Of a DNA stretch of 64,000 nt, positions 20,649-27,003 are shown piece after piece; the first letter of the stretch is position 1; each line of letters begins with the position of its first letter. The position numbers and the translations under genes were made by a program. This DNA comes from Schizochytrium sp. TIO01 (lineage: Eukaryota; Protista; Bigyra: Labyrinthulomycetes). Under the pieces are notes generated by a model that worked only from the letters and a program-made list of their open reading frames with translations, did not search any database and had not been told where the DNA came from. The stretch covers positions 1,855,648-1,919,647 of the forward strand of contig SMSO01000014.1 in the NCBI GenBank assembly GCA_004764695.1, written 5' to 3'.

Positions 20649-21666
20649 TCCTGTTTTGTTTTTTTTCTTTCCTTTCACTTATTTATTATCTATCATCCAT
20701 CTATCTCTGGAGATGCAGAGCTAGCTAGCTGCCCACGTCCTCGATTGTGCTTCGGCAGAAGTAAGTTCCCCTTTTCGCGAACTTGACGCTGACCAGGTAG
20801 GTCGATAAGCACACAGGCAGGCAGGCGCCTTGTTGATACTATTTCTTCGGCGCCTGCTTATTGCTTGGCCCTATTCGTTTCCCCATCGTTGGCCTTTTTA
20901 TGTGAGGCTGAAAGAAAGAAAGAAAGAGAGAAAGAAAGAACGAGAAAGGGGAAAAAAAGCGAGGATCTGTAGGGCCTATGAGTAGTTAAATGACTGCTAG
21001 GCGGCTTCGCATAAAGAACGATGGATTCACTCCGCGCGTGCGCAAGGGGGTGCGCGGGCACCCCTGAGAGGTGTGCATGCGCTGTCCCTTTTCTCTTGCG
21101 GGGTTATTGTTCTCAAGGGAACACCTAAATCCCAGAAAGCCCAAACGGTCATCTGCGAAGGATCTCGTTAATAAGTGTATGAGTATTCTATAAGGTCTTG
21201 CTTGGGGCTTAACATCATCAAAAGTACTACGAACCATAGAAGGCTGCAAAACTCACAGCGAGGCTGGTTCAATTACGGAAAGCGCCGAGACATTGTCAGA
21301 GTCTCTTGCAGCGGAGCCTGCTTGAGTGCTCTGCTTGCTTGCCTGCGTCGCAAGCTCGCTGGCTGGCTGGTTGGCCAGCAGGCGAGTCAACGTAAACGAG
21401 GATTTTCGCCATTCTGGTGTTGAATGGACCTATAAATTAGCTGCGGTCAAGGCATTGCAATCGCAAATCTATATATATTTGTATATATATATATTTTTTA
21501 CAACTAGTAGGCCGCTCAAAGCGTCTTTCAATCAAACACTATTTGCGCACGAAAAGGCAATTGGCTTGTCTAGTGTAGTCTTGAGCAGAAGTCTTGGGTT
21601 GAATAGTACCCCAACTACGTGGCCAAGAATAGCCAACTACTTGCGGACTGCGTGCTGACTGGAGAA

Positions 21667-24600
21667 ATGCGAAAATTCCCTCTTCCTCCAGGGAGTAGTC
21701 CTCTCCCACCGGGGAGCAGTAATACGTCAAGTACAAAGGTATCAACAGCTAATATTATCGTCGAGTTTCAGGACAAGGGGCTTGTCCAACCTAGAAGCAT
21801 TCGGGTTTGTAAAGCCGGGGATGAATGTGATGTTGAACAAATTTCCACTATTGTCAAGCAACGATGCTCAACCAGTCGCGTTGTCCTTGAAACCTCTCAG
21901 CTAGAGCACAACTATGAATTGCGTACAAATGGAGAACTCTTCGAATATATCAACGACCAAGTGGAGCACGAGCATAAACGTTTTGATGAAGAAGAACACC
22001 AGCCTGTCACCATTGTTCTTAAAGCCAGGTCCCTATCTGGGCCTCATACAGGCCGAAAGACAGGCAGTCAGAATGGAGGGGGGAATAAATTGTCATCTTT
22101 TACCAGGAAGCCACTTTCTAGTTCGGCTACATCACCAGCTCGTATTAGCGCCGTCTCCACCGCAAGCGAAACTATTGGAAATGAGATTGAGGATGAGTTT
22201 CAGGATGAAGACGAACATGAAGATCTTAGCACACTTGGAAAGCTTAAGCAACTTTTTCCTCACGATCGATCAAATCTCACACTATCATATCTTGAGGATC
22301 AATTGAGTGCCTATCGCATTAGCTGGGGAAGCTGGAACGTAGAAAGCTCCAACAAAACTATTGAAGATCTTTTTGAAGAAATCCGTAACAATTCATGCGA
22401 TCTGTACACGGATGACTTGGGTGTTATTCGAATTGTCCGACTTGTCCGTGTCAAAATTGTTGAACCAGACTCAAAGCATATTCTTGTCAATATCATGAAG
22501 ATGATGGACCAGAAAAAACATCACAGTAAAGTTCACTCGTTACCGGCATATAAATGCAAACGCGGAGAATCTCCATATCATGCAGCCTTGCGCAATGTAC
22601 AACAAGAACTTGGTCATGGTCTTTGGGGGCCCGTTAACTCAATTGAGTCAATGTATACATCATCGAAAAGTGCAATGGCTGAAAGCATCACCAGCACTAT
22701 CTCGCGAGACCCACATGCTCGCAGGGCAAATGTTGTACTACAATCGACAATTCTCGACCACATCGAGCCAACAGGTTTTGAGCGCCCAACACATGAGTTT
22801 CGGGATAGCCGATCCTTCCCTGGCCTACGTACTGCATACTATATTCATACTCTAGCTTTGTACATGAAAAGCACAAGAGTGCCTCGGAGAGGATCTTTCA
22901 CCGTAATAGACCAACAACGACCAGGAGTCATTCGTCTGTGGCAATGGATGCCTCCTGATCATGTCAACAGGACCATTCTCGGCAACCAAACAACAACAGA
23001 AGTATCAACTAAACAAGAGAAGGCTACGAGTCCTACCGGTCCTGGTTCACCCCAACAGGCCTCTATGCACCAACTTTTTGATGATCCTAAAAACTCACCT
23101 CCAGCTGAGCCCGCGCTACCTTTTCAAGATTCGCTTCGTGGTAAACACTTACTTGAATACAGAGCTGCCCGTTACCGCCAACGTCTGGCAGCTATGGATG
23201 GGCCTCTAGCTTCTTCAATCTTCTCTAGAATTTCAGAGTTTTGGTACAAAGAAAACGTACAGCCTACCTTGAGTGAGCGACACCAGCAAGAGGCTGAGAG
23301 AAACCTCGCCTATCATTACACTCTCCCCGTCCCCAGTGAGCTCACCGACATTTCTCTTGGAAACTGGCTTCAATGCTACGGCGTAAATGTTTCACTCTGG
23401 GGCAAAGGTCAAGCGAAAAAGGTGCAACAACTCGTTGATGAGGTTATTAACGGTGAATCAAGCTTGCACCTTACAGAGGTCACTGAGCTTGCACAAAGGC
23501 CAAGCGCTGCTTCGCCTGTCTTTACGCAAGGGAAAGATCTCCCAGTTCGAGCTGCAGTGCAAAATAAAGCACTGCGAAAGCAGCATGCTGTAATGTCCTA
23601 TCATCAGCCACGTCTAAACTTGGCTAAAAAGCCGCTTCGAGTAATTCATGTTGCAAAGGTCGAGCTTGTTCACGAGAAGAACCCAAACTTAGTTCTTGTC
23701 GAGACGCATCAGAGACTGGAAGATAGTCGTCTTCGTGTCCGCTTCAAGTCTCTTGCTGAAAAGTTCAAACCCAATGAAACAGCACGTGACGCGACTTTTC
23801 GAGGCATATACGAGGAGCTTATTGCTCCAAGCATTTATCTTGTAGACCAAGATGGAAACAAACTTATCATCCAGCGACCATCTCATGAAGAATCTAAGCG
23901 GTCTATTCGCGTCCTATCAATACATGCTCCAAAAGTTGAAATTCTTCAGTCTCCTTCTTATCCTGGTCTGGAGACTCGCTATCACTTGCATGTCTTTCGT
24001 TGCGTCATGTCCTTTCTACCAGACGAACCATTTTGCACTGAGGAGCCACGACCTCATAATGACGGTGCAATTGTGCATTTCTGGCGATGGGAAACACGGC
24101 AAATAATCAATGCAATGACGAACTCCCTGATTAACCAAGTTCGTTTCTATTTTCATCTTGTCCCACCCGCAAAGCGAGATTTTAACGTTCTTAAGAACTG
24201 GTTCTTCGAAGCGGCGGAAACAGATCAAGTCGACGTTATCAAACTTTTGTGTGCTCCACAAAATGCGAATGGCAATCAAATAGAGGATCAGGATGATTTC
24301 ACTCGTCGTTTTGTTTCAGTAGACCACAATCCACCACATGAAGAAGAGGAAGAGCAAGATCAATGGGAAAAAGAAGGTTACGCTTCCCAGCCGAGAAGAA
24401 ATAGCTCACTTGCAAAGAAACGGCTTGGGATTTTGGATCCTTCCTCCCCTGACGTTAGAGATACACAGGGTCGCAGCGCTGTCCGCGTTGCCGCATTGCA
24501 CAAAGCATACAATGCTGTGGATGCTTTGATTCGAATCTGCCTTGAAAATGCGCAAATAAAAGCTGAAGAGACACCAAAGACACCTCGGAATGAAAAGCTA

Positions 24601-27003
24601 CAGCAACTCGATGCGGATGCTATCAATCAACCAGAGATTGTTTCTTTTGATAGTGAGGTTCCCTGTACACTGATTTATTATGCTGCAATTGCTAATAAGG
24701 TAGAATTAGTGAAGCATTTGCTAGGCTCCAATAGTGTTGCGGTCAACTCAGTTTGTTTACATTCGTGTGTTTCATGCGGATCTGTAGATGTACTGGAAGT
24801 ACTCCTTCCGCGTCTGAGATACGACCCTCTAGCAAGGTCAAGCACTGCACGCAGGTTACTATTCGGGGTTGAACTGCACACTGCTCTTAATCTTAATGAC
24901 CCGGAAGTAAGGAAAAATTACTCCGTAGATCTCCCGAGGGCAGATAACTTTCAGTACTTTGAGTCCCTATTGGTTCACATTGAATTGGAGCTCAGTGTAG
25001 CTGCCAAGGCTGGTAGCAAGTTGATCTGGAAGAGCGAATTGGAAAAGGACACCAGGGCAATACTGGCACCACCCTTGAAAGCCTTGGAGGTAGTTTTGCA
25101 GTACTGTAACCCTACAGCATCCTCATATCGAACCTTTCTACTTCTCTATCTTCATAAGGTCATTGAATTGGACGACCAGAGCGAAGAAACGCGGATTTTT
25201 CGTAGGTTTGTAGCCCGATCTCGATTCCCTCTACATATTGGACTTATGTGTGCTCATGTTCTTCGCAGTGTCTTTGGGTTGGAGAAGAGATTTTGGGATT
25301 CCTACCAAGCCCATGCAGATAGCTTTCAGGATCTTGTTTGCGAAATTCTAGACTGTTGCGAAGATCAAGACGAAGCCGAGGAGCTTCTAAGAGAGCGTGC
25401 TGATATTCCAGCTTGGCGGCGTGACAATGGGGAATTCAGCAGTCGCTCAATGGCGCATCGCCACAAAACAACATGTGCCTACCTGGCTGTCAAGTACCGT
25501 TTGAAACGAGTTGTTGCTCACAAGTTTTTTACGACACAAAACGATTCAATCTGGTTCAATGATGCCCACGATAGCCTTTACACACGTGGGCTTGGGAGCC
25601 TCGCCAAATTATCTGCAAGCGTGTTTCCATTGTTTAAGCAAGGAAACCATAACGAGACGCCAATAGGAAATTATATTCTTGCAAGAAGTTCACAACGCTT
25701 CGAGGTTGATCGAAAAACAAATCTTGAGGGGTTTGTTTCGTATATTTTACGTGTTCCCGGGTTTAAAACGGCCGTACAAGGCACCTATCGTGTGTGTGTT
25801 AGCATCGGGCTTTTGGTGTTCTTGGTACTTCTTACACCTGTATTATGGTTCTTGCCGTTTTCACCGTCTCTTCGAATTATCGTAGACATACCTCGTACAG
25901 AATTTGCTTGCTGCTATTTTAAATGGTCTGTATGGAGTATGTCTTATGTTACGTATTTGTTTGCATTCGCTTATCTTGCTATAGCGAATTCGAACGGCAA
26001 AGCTTCGACCATGTGGAACGCTGAATTGGTGCTTTTCATATTCTTTCTCGGCAACTTTGTTGGTATTATCGAGCAAATTGCAGAGATTGGGTTTGGCCCT
26101 TTCATGCAACACAGTGTAAATCTCGTTGATCTTATTTCTTGCTTAATGATCACTGCCGCTTTTTGCGTCGACAAATCTTCAAGCGCGTATGACATTCTTA
26201 TGTCGATTGGAGCTATTCTCTCGACTTTTCGATTGTTTCACCTCTTTAGTGCCAGTAAAGAACTAGGTCCATTATGGATTACTATGCAATATGTGGTGTG
26301 GGATGTAATCAGATTCCTAGCGTTCCTTGCTGTGGTTCTAATTGCTTTCATTTTGGCCTTTGTGTTCCTTCTTGGAGGAGCAGGAGTTCCTGGGTTTGAA
26401 ACAGCGGGGGAGACGTTTTCTTCTCTCATTTGGTCTGTGTTTGAAGCTTTTACTACATATGACCCAACTCAACCGTATCGTACTCAATTGTACCAAGTAT
26501 TTCTGTTTGGATTTTTGCTGATTGCTGCGGTCCTTCTTACAAATTTACTAATTGCAATGATGACACGTCGGTTTGAACAAGTTGCACAGACAGCACGAGT
26601 GCAATGGCTCTATGCACTTGCGCAACTCATTGAAAAGTATAGTTTGATGCCAATTGCCCCAAGTCCTTTTAATCTTCTGACGTGTGTCCCAAATCTGATT
26701 TTTCTGCTTCGCAATAGGAAACAATCTTTATATGATCCATCACACACAGGTAAAAAGCCAGATAAGAAAACTGCTGTTGTGCCTATGCCTAGTGAAGATC
26801 TTTGGACTGATGTTCTTAAACGAGAGATTGAGCAAGTCTTAAGCTTTCGATGTACGCGACGGGCTGTCGTGACAAGGTATATTCGCCAAGAAAAATTGCG
26901 TGTAGCAAGAAACCGTGCTACTGAACATTCGCTTGAGTATCTTACGAATGCCGTGAATCAGATACTCTGGTGGCAGCAAGATCCCGACTACGGGACGATC
27001 TGA
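21667..27003 (+). CDS. TRP-family (TRPM/TRPC-like) cation channel with two N-terminal Nudix-like domains and ankyrin repeats
   Basis: Uninterrupted ORF; first ATG 21667 (the ORF track start at 21619 is GTG). C-terminal 6-TM block with S4-S5 FRLFHLFSASKELGPLWITMQYVVWDVIRFL, S6 VLLTNLLIAMMTRRFEQV and TRP helix QWLYALAQLIEKYSLMPIAPSPFNLL. Pre-S1 TCAYLAVKYRLKRVVAHKFF..Q..SIW is TRPM/TRPC-like. Ankyrin-like DTQGRSAVRVAALHKAYNAVDALI and TLIYYAAIANKVELVKHLL. Confidence 0.9.
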   Translation: MRKFPLPPGSSPLPPGSSNTSSTKVSTANIIVEFQDKGLVQPRSIRVCKAGDECDVEQISTIVKQRCSTSRVVLETSQLEHNYELRTNGELFEYINDQVEHEHKRFDEEEHQPVTIVLKARSLSGPHTGRKTGSQNGGGNKLSSFTRKPLSSSATSPARISAVSTASETIGNEIEDEFQDEDEHEDLSTLGKLKQLFPHDRSNLTLSYLEDQLSAYRISWGSWNVESSNKTIEDLFEEIRNNSCDLYTDDLGVIRIVRLVRVKIVEPDSKHILVNIMKMMDQKKHHSKVHSLPAYKCKRGESPYHAALRNVQQELGHGLWGPVNSIESMYTSSKSAMAESITSTISRDPHARRANVVLQSTILDHIEPTGFERPTHEFRDSRSFPGLRTAYYIHTLALYMKSTRVPRRGSFTVIDQQRPGVIRLWQWMPPDHVNRTILGNQTTTEVSTKQEKATSPTGPGSPQQASMHQLFDDPKNSPPAEPALPFQDSLRGKHLLEYRAARYRQRLAAMDGPLASSIFSRISEFWYKENVQPTLSERHQQEAERNLAYHYTLPVPSELTDISLGNWLQCYGVNVSLWGKGQAKKVQQLVDEVINGESSLHLTEVTELAQRPSAASPVFTQGKDLPVRAAVQNKALRKQHAVMSYHQPRLNLAKKPLRVIHVAKVELVHEKNPNLVLVETHQRLEDSRLRVRFKSLAEKFKPNETARDATFRGIYEELIAPSIYLVDQDGNKLIIQRPSHEESKRSIRVLSIHAPKVEILQSPSYPGLETRYHLHVFRCVMSFLPDEPFCTEEPRPHNDGAIVHFWRWETRQIINAMTNSLINQVRFYFHLVPPAKRDFNVLKNWFFEAAETDQVDVIKLLCAPQNANGNQIEDQDDFTRRFVSVDHNPPHEEEEEQDQWEKEGYASQPRRNSSLAKKRLGILDPSSPDVRDTQGRSAVRVAALHKAYNAVDALIRICLENAQIKAEETPKTPRNEKLQQLDADAINQPEIVSFDSEVPCTLIYYAAIANKVELVKHLLGSNSVAVNSVCLHSCVSCGSVDVLEVLLPRLRYDPLARSSTARRLLFGVELHTALNLNDPEVRKNYSVDLPRADNFQYFESLLVHIELELSVAAKAGSKLIWKSELEKDTRAILAPPLKALEVVLQYCNPTASSYRTFLLLYLHKVIELDDQSEETRIFRRFVARSRFPLHIGLMCAHVLRSVFGLEKRFWDSYQAHADSFQDLVCEILDCCEDQDEAEELLRERADIPAWRRDNGEFSSRSMAHRHKTTCAYLAVKYRLKRVVAHKFFTTQNDSIWFNDAHDSLYTRGLGSLAKLSASVFPLFKQGNHNETPIGNYILARSSQRFEVDRKTNLEGFVSYILRVPGFKTAVQGTYRVCVSIGLLVFLVLLTPVLWFLPFSPSLRIIVDIPRTEFACCYFKWSVWSMSYVTYLFAFAYLAIANSNGKASTMWNAELVLFIFFLGNFVGIIEQIAEIGFGPFMQHSVNLVDLISCLMITAAFCVDKSSSAYDILMSIGAILSTFRLFHLFSASKELGPLWITMQYVVWDVIRFLAFLAVVLIAFILAFVFLLGGAGVPGFETAGETFSSLIWSVFEAFTTYDPTQPYRTQLYQVFLFGFLLIAAVLLTNLLIAMMTRRFEQVAQTARVQWLYALAQLIEKYSLMPIAPSPFNLLTCVPNLIFLLRNRKQSLYDPSHTGKKPDKKTAVVPMPSEDLWTDVLKREIEQVLSFRCTRRAVVTRYIRQEKLRVARNRATEHSLEYLTNAVNQILWWQQDPDYGTI

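Follow-up and report, generated by a model that had tools for sequence, protein, structure and literature searches.

A TRPC-like channel of labyrinthulomycetes with two N-terminal Nudix-fold domains: a probable second origin of the Nudix–TRP fusion

TRPM2 is the textbook example of a transient receptor potential (TRP) channel gated through an appended Nudix domain. Judged by sequence comparison and structure models, a second Nudix-coupled TRP channel, of an origin independent of animal TRPM2, is encoded in a window of 64,000 nucleotides (the whole stretch of DNA that was analysed) from Schizochytrium sp. TIO01 (contig SMSO01000014.1, positions 1,855,648 to 1,919,647 of the forward strand). Schizochytrium belongs to the thraustochytrids, which are organisms of biotechnological interest. 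The protein comprises, from its N-terminus, a conserved region, two tandem Nudix-like domains (copy 1 and copy 2), ankyrin repeats and a six-helix channel domain (Table 1).

The Nudix–ankyrin–TRP gene and its channel half

On the + strand, one reading frame stays open from 21619 to 27003 (positions in the window), with 1794 codons and no stop over 5.4 kb. The first ATG in frame, at 21667, is the likely start of a product of 1778 residues encoded by a single exon and terminated at 27001-27003; upstream of it the frame is open from about 21607. The same protein (P0001, 1778 residues) has been called independently on other assemblies. The preliminary description of this locus, made from its letters alone, had suggested a search for the Nudix-Nudix-ankyrin-TRP architecture elsewhere, and this order of parts was indeed found in three other labyrinthulomycete proteins (P0002, P0003 and P0004; 1550-1809 residues). 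These orthologues share 45-60% identity, are conserved over their full length, junction segments included, and begin at an equivalent methionine. P0002, from Hondaea fermentalgiana (Thraustochytrida), is already public with precomputed Pfam matches that include NUDIX, and bears the automatic annotation ‘Short transient receptor potential channel 3’. A 345-residue fragment, P0034, matches the last part of copy 2 as well as the ankyrin region and looks like a piece of a further orthologue spanning that junction.

Given the stop-free frame, the collinear orthologues and P0034, comparison of the sequences indicates that the Nudix pair, the ankyrin repeats and the channel form one real gene. That the Nudix and channel halves are separate adjacent genes, or that splicing or termination between them went unrecognized, is very improbable: copy 2 is separated from the ankyrin repeats by a variable, acidic stretch of low complexity, which would give room for such an artefact, but the 5.4-kb frame has no stop, the uninterrupted order is identical in four species with conserved junction segments, NCBI's annotation of Hondaea, like the calls made on other assemblies, has one product, and P0034 matches both sides of that very stretch. 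Prior description of the architecture, which the preliminary account had allowed for, did not come to light, since a full-text literature search found no paper on it or on the Nudix clade involved.

The channel half has the features that define the TRP superfamily, namely a six-helix pore, a TRP-type S6 and a TRP helix. Pfam Ion_trans matches at 5.9e-10 in a search with the whole protein and at 2.1e-11 at 25990-26592, accompanied by a weak match to YVC1_C, and S6 and the TRP-box tryptophan align with those of TRPC6. When the C-terminal 501 residues were compared with the PDB, the best match was TRPC6 (1.9e-16), followed by TRPC4, TRPC3 and TRPC5 (to ~1e-12) and then by TRPM5, TRPM4 and TRPM2; the best 60 of the 129 sequences matched at E ≤ 1 are all TRP-family channels. 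Likeness to TRPC3/4/5/6, the best sequence matches for S4-S6, extends to the N-terminal ankyrin repeats, to the S6 motif LLxNxLIAM, to the TRP helix (VQWLYALAQL vs VEWKFARAKL in TRPC6) and to the proline motif that follows it (P-S-P-F-N-L-L vs P-V-P-F-N-L-V; P-x-P-F-N-L in common). Unlike TRPC channels, the protein has ~1000 additional N-terminal residues, its EWKFAR box is reduced to the tryptophan, and neither TRP_2 nor SLOG/LSDAT_euk was detected in a Pfam search of the whole protein at E ≤ 1. Beyond the three orthologues, the proteins nearest to it, all at 25-30% identity, are TRPC and TRPM channels of animals together with an unnamed ankyrin-repeat protein. By sequence it is thus best described as a TRPC-like cation channel of the TRP superfamily, specific to labyrinthulomycetes.

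The 64-Mb genome contains at least two TRP-like loci, the present gene included. The other (L016, at G000:C31:8378764-8382306) has an open frame of 1255 residues with 23% identity to the pore region of the present protein (E 2.4e-9). As one of only two such loci detected, a lower bound, the channel described here probably ranks among the major sensory cation channels of thraustochytrids.

Two segments of the protein call for comment. The ankyrin region probably extends on both sides past the core matched by Pfam. The N-terminal conserved region has no Pfam match; Atlas feature hits of 0.79-0.90 to beta-grasp domains (PB1, TDP-43_N, CIDE-N, ubiquitin-like) provide a weak lead.

Table 1. Features of the Nudix–ankyrin–TRP gene (positions in the window)
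Feature	Position	Strand	Basis
Nudix-Nudix-ANK-TRP coding sequence, single exon	21667..27003	+	Translation of the open reading frame; identical P0001; three collinear orthologues
N-terminal conserved region, ~110-130 residues, unknown fold	21667..22050	+	Kept in all four orthologues
Nudix-like domain copy 1, degenerate, with an insertion after the Nudix helix	22264..22998	+	Pfam NUDIX; family profile; AlphaFold2 model; key residues
Nudix box of copy 1, Y-x5-E-x7-R-N-V-Q-Q-E-L-G	22546..22614	+	Motif alignment; position 1 is Y, two of three helix glutamates lost
Nudix-like domain copy 2, canonical family member	23320..24141	+	Family profile; AlphaFold2 model; Foldseek; key residues
Nudix box of copy 2, E-x5-E-x7-R-G-I-Y-E-E-L-I	23755..23823	+	Family-type box; EE kept, ‘RE’ glutamate gone
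Ankyrin repeat core as matched by Pfam	24661..24810	+	Ank_2 4.7e-08; Ank 4.1e-06
Six-helix TRP transmembrane domain, S1-S6	25771..26592	+	Pfam Ion_trans; hydrophobic segments; alignment with TRPC6 S4-S6
TRP helix with conserved tryptophan, then proline motif	26593..26679	+	HMMER alignment with TRPC6 chain 6uz8_A

Two copies of a Nudix-fold domain

An exhaustive HMMER search with the N-terminal region retrieved 478 proteins at E ≤ 1e-3, most of them ~190 residues long, and both copies align end to end with these stand-alone proteins. The family domain, itself of ~190 residues, has three parts: a helical extension of ~60 residues (L..WL...G.D...WG.G.AK....L..E...GE), a core with E..Q, D-G-R-x-R-x-R and a Nudix-like box, and the motifs S-x-S-Y-P-G-L and W-x-W. 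In copy 2, a low-complexity insertion separates the N-terminal helices from the core. The motif series from which an internal duplication had been proposed lies where it was placed, at 22291-22947 and 23356-24090, with both repeats inside the single open frame, and the duplication proved real. BLASTP aligns copy 1 with copy 2 at E 4e-5 and 22-23% identity (23% over 181 columns). A profile of 55 stand-alone family proteins and copy 2, from which copy 1 was left out, recovers copy 1 at E 1.4e-22 in a search of all 64 Mb of the genome; the same profile scores 170.6 bits on copy 2, which is itself among the profile sequences. A local hidden Markov model search of P0001 gave envelopes at residues 200-444 (5.7e-27) and 552-825.

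The history of the pair is less clear. FastTree placed the two copies far apart, and a separate acquisition of each was considered. This claim was dropped after an approximately unbiased (AU) test with IQ-TREE, in which the tree uniting both copies was not rejected (p-AU 0.751) and had a higher likelihood than the unconstrained one. The duplication may have taken place either inside the channel lineage or before the fusion.

Assignment to the Nudix fold comes from sequence and from models. Copy 1 scores 26.2 bits alone and 22.1 bits in the full protein against Pfam NUDIX PF00293, for which the curated cut-off is 21.1, and several relatives in the family also pass. For copy 2, no Pfam NUDIX match was detected. 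Searched against the PDB, the family profile finds NudG (6.5e-5) and MutT (3.5e-4), and sequence searches with either single copy reach only E ~0.2-0.9. AlphaFold2 models, both built with the family alignment, have mean confidences (predicted local distance difference test) of 85.6 for copy 2 and 81.4 for copy 1. With copy 2, every match listed by Foldseek is a Nudix protein, at probability 1.00 and a top E of ~2e-5. Structural comparison of this copy with DIPP/NUDT3 and RppH gives Z scores of 10.7-10.2 and root-mean-square deviations (rmsd) of 2.7-3.0 Å over 108-133 residues; the corresponding values for copy 1 against RppH are Z 9.3 and 3.0 Å over 132 residues. Nearly all of the best structural matches of both copies are Nudix proteins. 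A sequence match of copy 2 to an MBT repeat (E 0.18) was judged to be due to chance.

Checked in this manner, repeat by repeat, with AlphaFold and Foldseek, the proposal that both repeats are Nudix domains holds: both model as such. NUDT9 or TRPM2 chains are absent from the PDB matches of the family profile at E ≤ 1 and from the top 50 structure matches. As modelled, both copies thus have a Nudix fold that is not NUDT9-like. RppH and DIPP/NUDT3, the closest solved structures, share the Nudix alpha/beta/alpha core (Z ~9-10.7, rmsd ~2.7-3.2 Å over 108-133 residues) and differ in having only ~12-15% identity, in possessing the canonical box glutamate that is missing here, and in lacking the N-terminal helical extension of ~60 residues.

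The two copies have fared differently with respect to the residues characteristic of the family, taken as the 40 key positions that are conserved in 72% or more of 175 family domains. Of these, copy 2 retains 39 in every one of the four orthologues but P0002, which aligned only in part. Copy 1 retains 22-25 across all four (25 of 40 here): it is without E..Q, both arginines of R-x-R, the glutamate of E-K and a glutamate of the box, but keeps the helical extension, S-x-S-[FY]-P-G-L and W-x-W. Identity between species is 43-69% for copy 1 and 54-65% for copy 2. Since copy 1 is as conserved as copy 2 despite its lost residues, selection maintains it for a role other than that of the ancestral site.

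Neither copy has the canonical box, G-x5-E-x7-R-E-U-x-E-E-x-G-U, with all three helix glutamates. Copy 1 also lacks the arginine of the box in two orthologues, P0003 and P0004. The departure is not peculiar to the channel: box position 16, the first glutamate of REUxEE, is never Glu in the 175 family domains (Gly in 73, Ala in 52, Cys in 37), and position 1 is Glu in place of the canonical Gly in 152 of the 175. Because this first glutamate is absent from both copies and from all domains of the clade, canonical Nudix hydrolysis by either copy is doubtful, and work on TRPM2 and NUDT9 serves as a guide to such boxes. NUDT9 with an RILGEE box is inactive, and the same EF-to-IL change in nvNUDT9-H leaves a turnover number (kcat) of ~1% of wild type (PMC6461439). 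Human TRPM2, with the box RILRQE, is inactive yet still binds ADP-ribose, while ancient TRPM2 channels are active ADP-ribose hydrolases (PMC6461439). The RNVQQE of copy 1 resembles this binding-only RILRQE (PMC6461439) and, by analogy with the TRPM2 and NUDT9 boxes, copy 1 would be a binding-only or purely structural domain. The suggestion in the preliminary description that the protein might be a hydrolysing ‘chanzyme’ is weakened by these two observations, the missing Mg-binding glutamate in both boxes and the likeness of RNVQQE to an inactive box.

Like TRPM2, the protein is a TRP-superfamily cation channel covalently joined to a Nudix fold. The arrangement is otherwise dissimilar. TRPM2 carries a C-terminal NUDT9-homology domain, whereas the Nudix domains of the thraustochytrid protein are N-terminal, present in two copies and members of another clade. 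Furthermore, SLOG/MHR domains have no Pfam match in it at E ≤ 1, its pore is nearest TRPC, and its lineage is the Stramenopiles, not the Holozoa. Because the domain is not NUDT9-like, SLOG/MHR was undetected and the pore is closest to TRPC, sequence and models argue that the fusion arose independently of TRPM2. The preliminary description, in which a different and duplicated Nudix family at the N-terminus had been taken to indicate an independent origin, is supported on this point, as no relationship to NUDT9 or SLOG was found. A second, independent fusion, differing from TRPM2 in Nudix clade, position in the protein, TRP subfamily and eukaryotic supergroup, would show that evolution can arrive repeatedly at the coupling of Nudix sensors to TRP gates.

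Candidate roles of the tandem module

The reading that we favour, to which we give a probability of roughly 0.55, is that the tandem Nudix module acts as a cytosolic sensor of a phosphorylated small molecule and regulates the TRP gate, binding being likelier than turnover. The ligand would be a nucleoside-diphosphate-X compound or a polyphosphate. Copy 2 is the putative ligand-binding site, because it has kept all of the polar residues of the family (E..Q, D-x-R-x-R-x-R, E-K, E, R, E-E, S-x-S-Y-P-G-L, W-x-W), and copy 1 would serve as its structural or allosteric partner in a pseudo-dimer. Occupancy of the site would be transmitted through the ankyrin and linker region to the gate formed by S6 and the TRP helix, in a manner analogous to, and evolved independently of, the gating of TRPM2 by ADP-ribose.

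Several considerations weigh against this sensor model. Ligand sensing and the gating mechanism are both inferred by analogy with TRPM2. The clade is strongly conserved in the form of small stand-alone bacterial proteins, which is typical of enzymes, and copy 2 may catalyse a reaction with the help of a metal site of another kind, to which the Glu at box position 1, for example, might contribute. A prediction of the complex between copy 1 and copy 2 gave no verdict (score 0.00; controls were not run), and so lends the pseudo-dimer no support while not speaking against it either. Finally, RppH acts on RNA 5′ ends and DIPP on inositol pyrophosphates, and with these as the closest structures the ligand could be of more than one class.

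A rather unlikely alternative is that the protein is a true channel-enzyme, in which copy 2, with its non-canonical Nudix box, actively hydrolyses an activating or inhibiting ligand and so times the channel signal, as in invertebrate and choanoflagellate TRPM2. The 39-40 clade-conserved residues of copy 2 include the E-E, E7 and R15 of the box and are joined by a conserved acidic/basic cluster; bacterial stand-alone proteins of ~190 residues annotated as NUDIX are most simply enzymes; and ancient TRPM2 channels do hydrolyse ADP-ribose (PMC6461439). Set against this, the Mg-coordinating first glutamate of REUxEE is missing in copy 2, as it is in each of the 175 family domains examined, an equivalent change being the one that abolishes the activity of NUDT9 and brings that of nvNUDT9-H down to about a hundredth (PMC6461439).

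Improbable, too, and more so, is a role for both Nudix folds as pseudoenzyme scaffolds without a small-molecule ligand, serving channel assembly, localization or protein-protein contacts. Copy 1, conserved despite the loss of key residues, illustrates that the fold can be retained for non-catalytic reasons, and the adjoining ankyrin repeats, possibly along with a beta-grasp domain, are protein-interaction modules. Such a role would nevertheless make it hard to explain, without a binding site in use, why copy 2 should keep the near-complete polar set of bacterial and eukaryotic stand-alone members (39 of 40 in three of four orthologues).

The Nudix clade beyond the channel

Identification of the channel also provides a handle on an uncharacterised Nudix clade of bacteria and eukaryotes, whose ligand could be revealed by a channel read-out. 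In its key residues (39 of 40), helical extension, box of the type E-x5-E-x7-R-[GAC]-U-x-E-E, S-x-S-Y-P-G-L and W-x-W, copy 2 is like the stand-alone members. The present domains differ from these in forming part of a channel, in their duplication, in the insertions that interrupt them and in the degeneration of one copy. The preliminary description had recognized an uncharacterised family of stand-alone proteins in plants and protists. Members are indeed mostly stand-alone, ~190 residues long and poorly annotated, but the restriction to plants and protists does not stand: the named stand-alone members found are bacterial ‘NUDIX domain-containing proteins’ of Chloroflexota (Ardenticatenaceae and Promineifilum). 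A member is present in four of the 151 sampled genomes of that Chloroflexota class, and a locus search with one bacterial member returned two Promineifilum loci only. Clusters from a language model comprise Streptophyta, Chlorophyta and Bacteria, which is a lead only. In the bacterial neighbourhoods, a class I/II aminotransferase is adjacent or near in three of four Chloroflexota loci (L006, L012, L013) and PdxS adjoins in one; as a clue to function this was set aside, for it is probably shared synteny among relatives.

Fusions were surveyed among the matches listed, a further 328 family matches lying outside the survey. Within it, tandem copies are common, also outside TRP channels; 27 proteins have two hits and nine have three. 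In tandem proteins of 600-870 residues, the canonical copy comes first, with 32-38 of the 40 key residues, and is followed by a degenerate one with 22-29, the reverse of the TRP order; these proteins (P0031, P0036, P0049, P0059, P0063, P0066, P0072, P0093, P0100 and P0137) come from contigs of ~1.9-2.9 kb, and no Pfam match was obtained for their C-terminal 200-350 residues. The recurrence of pairs made of one good and one degenerate copy suggests, from sequence, that the domain works as a dimer. Both copies are canonical in P0005, a haptophyte-like protein in which the domain is fused to ankyrin repeats.

Other partners were found in the same genome and elsewhere. A paralogue on the contig of the window, ~227 kb upstream of it (L005:3705-7445, + strand; G000:C13:1648704-1652444), has a frame of 1246 residues in which one Nudix-like copy (~residues 135-335) is followed by a kinase-like TCAD9 domain (4.6e-30) and then by the first part of a NACHT NTPase domain (2.3e-06). 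As this frame stops within NACHT, an intron or more exons are likely. A Nudix-like domain also precedes the start of a TCAD9 domain in P0151 (576 residues) and directly follows a Cas_csx3 domain (3.3e-18; residues 303-380) in P0104 (586 residues). Taken together, the partners of the clade point to signalling. It is conceivable, if improbable, that the domains of the clade receive or process a second messenger that derives from a nucleotide and serves immune-type or stress signalling, with the TRP channel as an effector that turns the message into cation or Ca2+ influx. If true, this would account for the range of partners to which the domain is fused (TCAD9-NACHT, Csx3-like domains, ankyrin repeats, ion channels), and the protein would be a TRP-based analogue, in a eukaryote, of effectors gated by messengers, with an evolutionary origin separate from that of ADP-ribose-gated TRPM2.

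Two minor observations concern further members. Two gene models from Prorocentrum cordatum and Polarella glacialis, P0037 (2697 residues) and P0161 (4071 residues), combine two full copies and a partial third with the ligand-binding and membrane domains of Cys-loop receptors; these may be merged tandem genes, which are frequent in dinoflagellate models. In the Schizochytrium genome itself there is a fourth, more diverged copy, without a Pfam match, in a frame of 300 residues (L004:1318-2220, − strand; G000:C31 ~243137-243634), recovered at E 2.9e-11.

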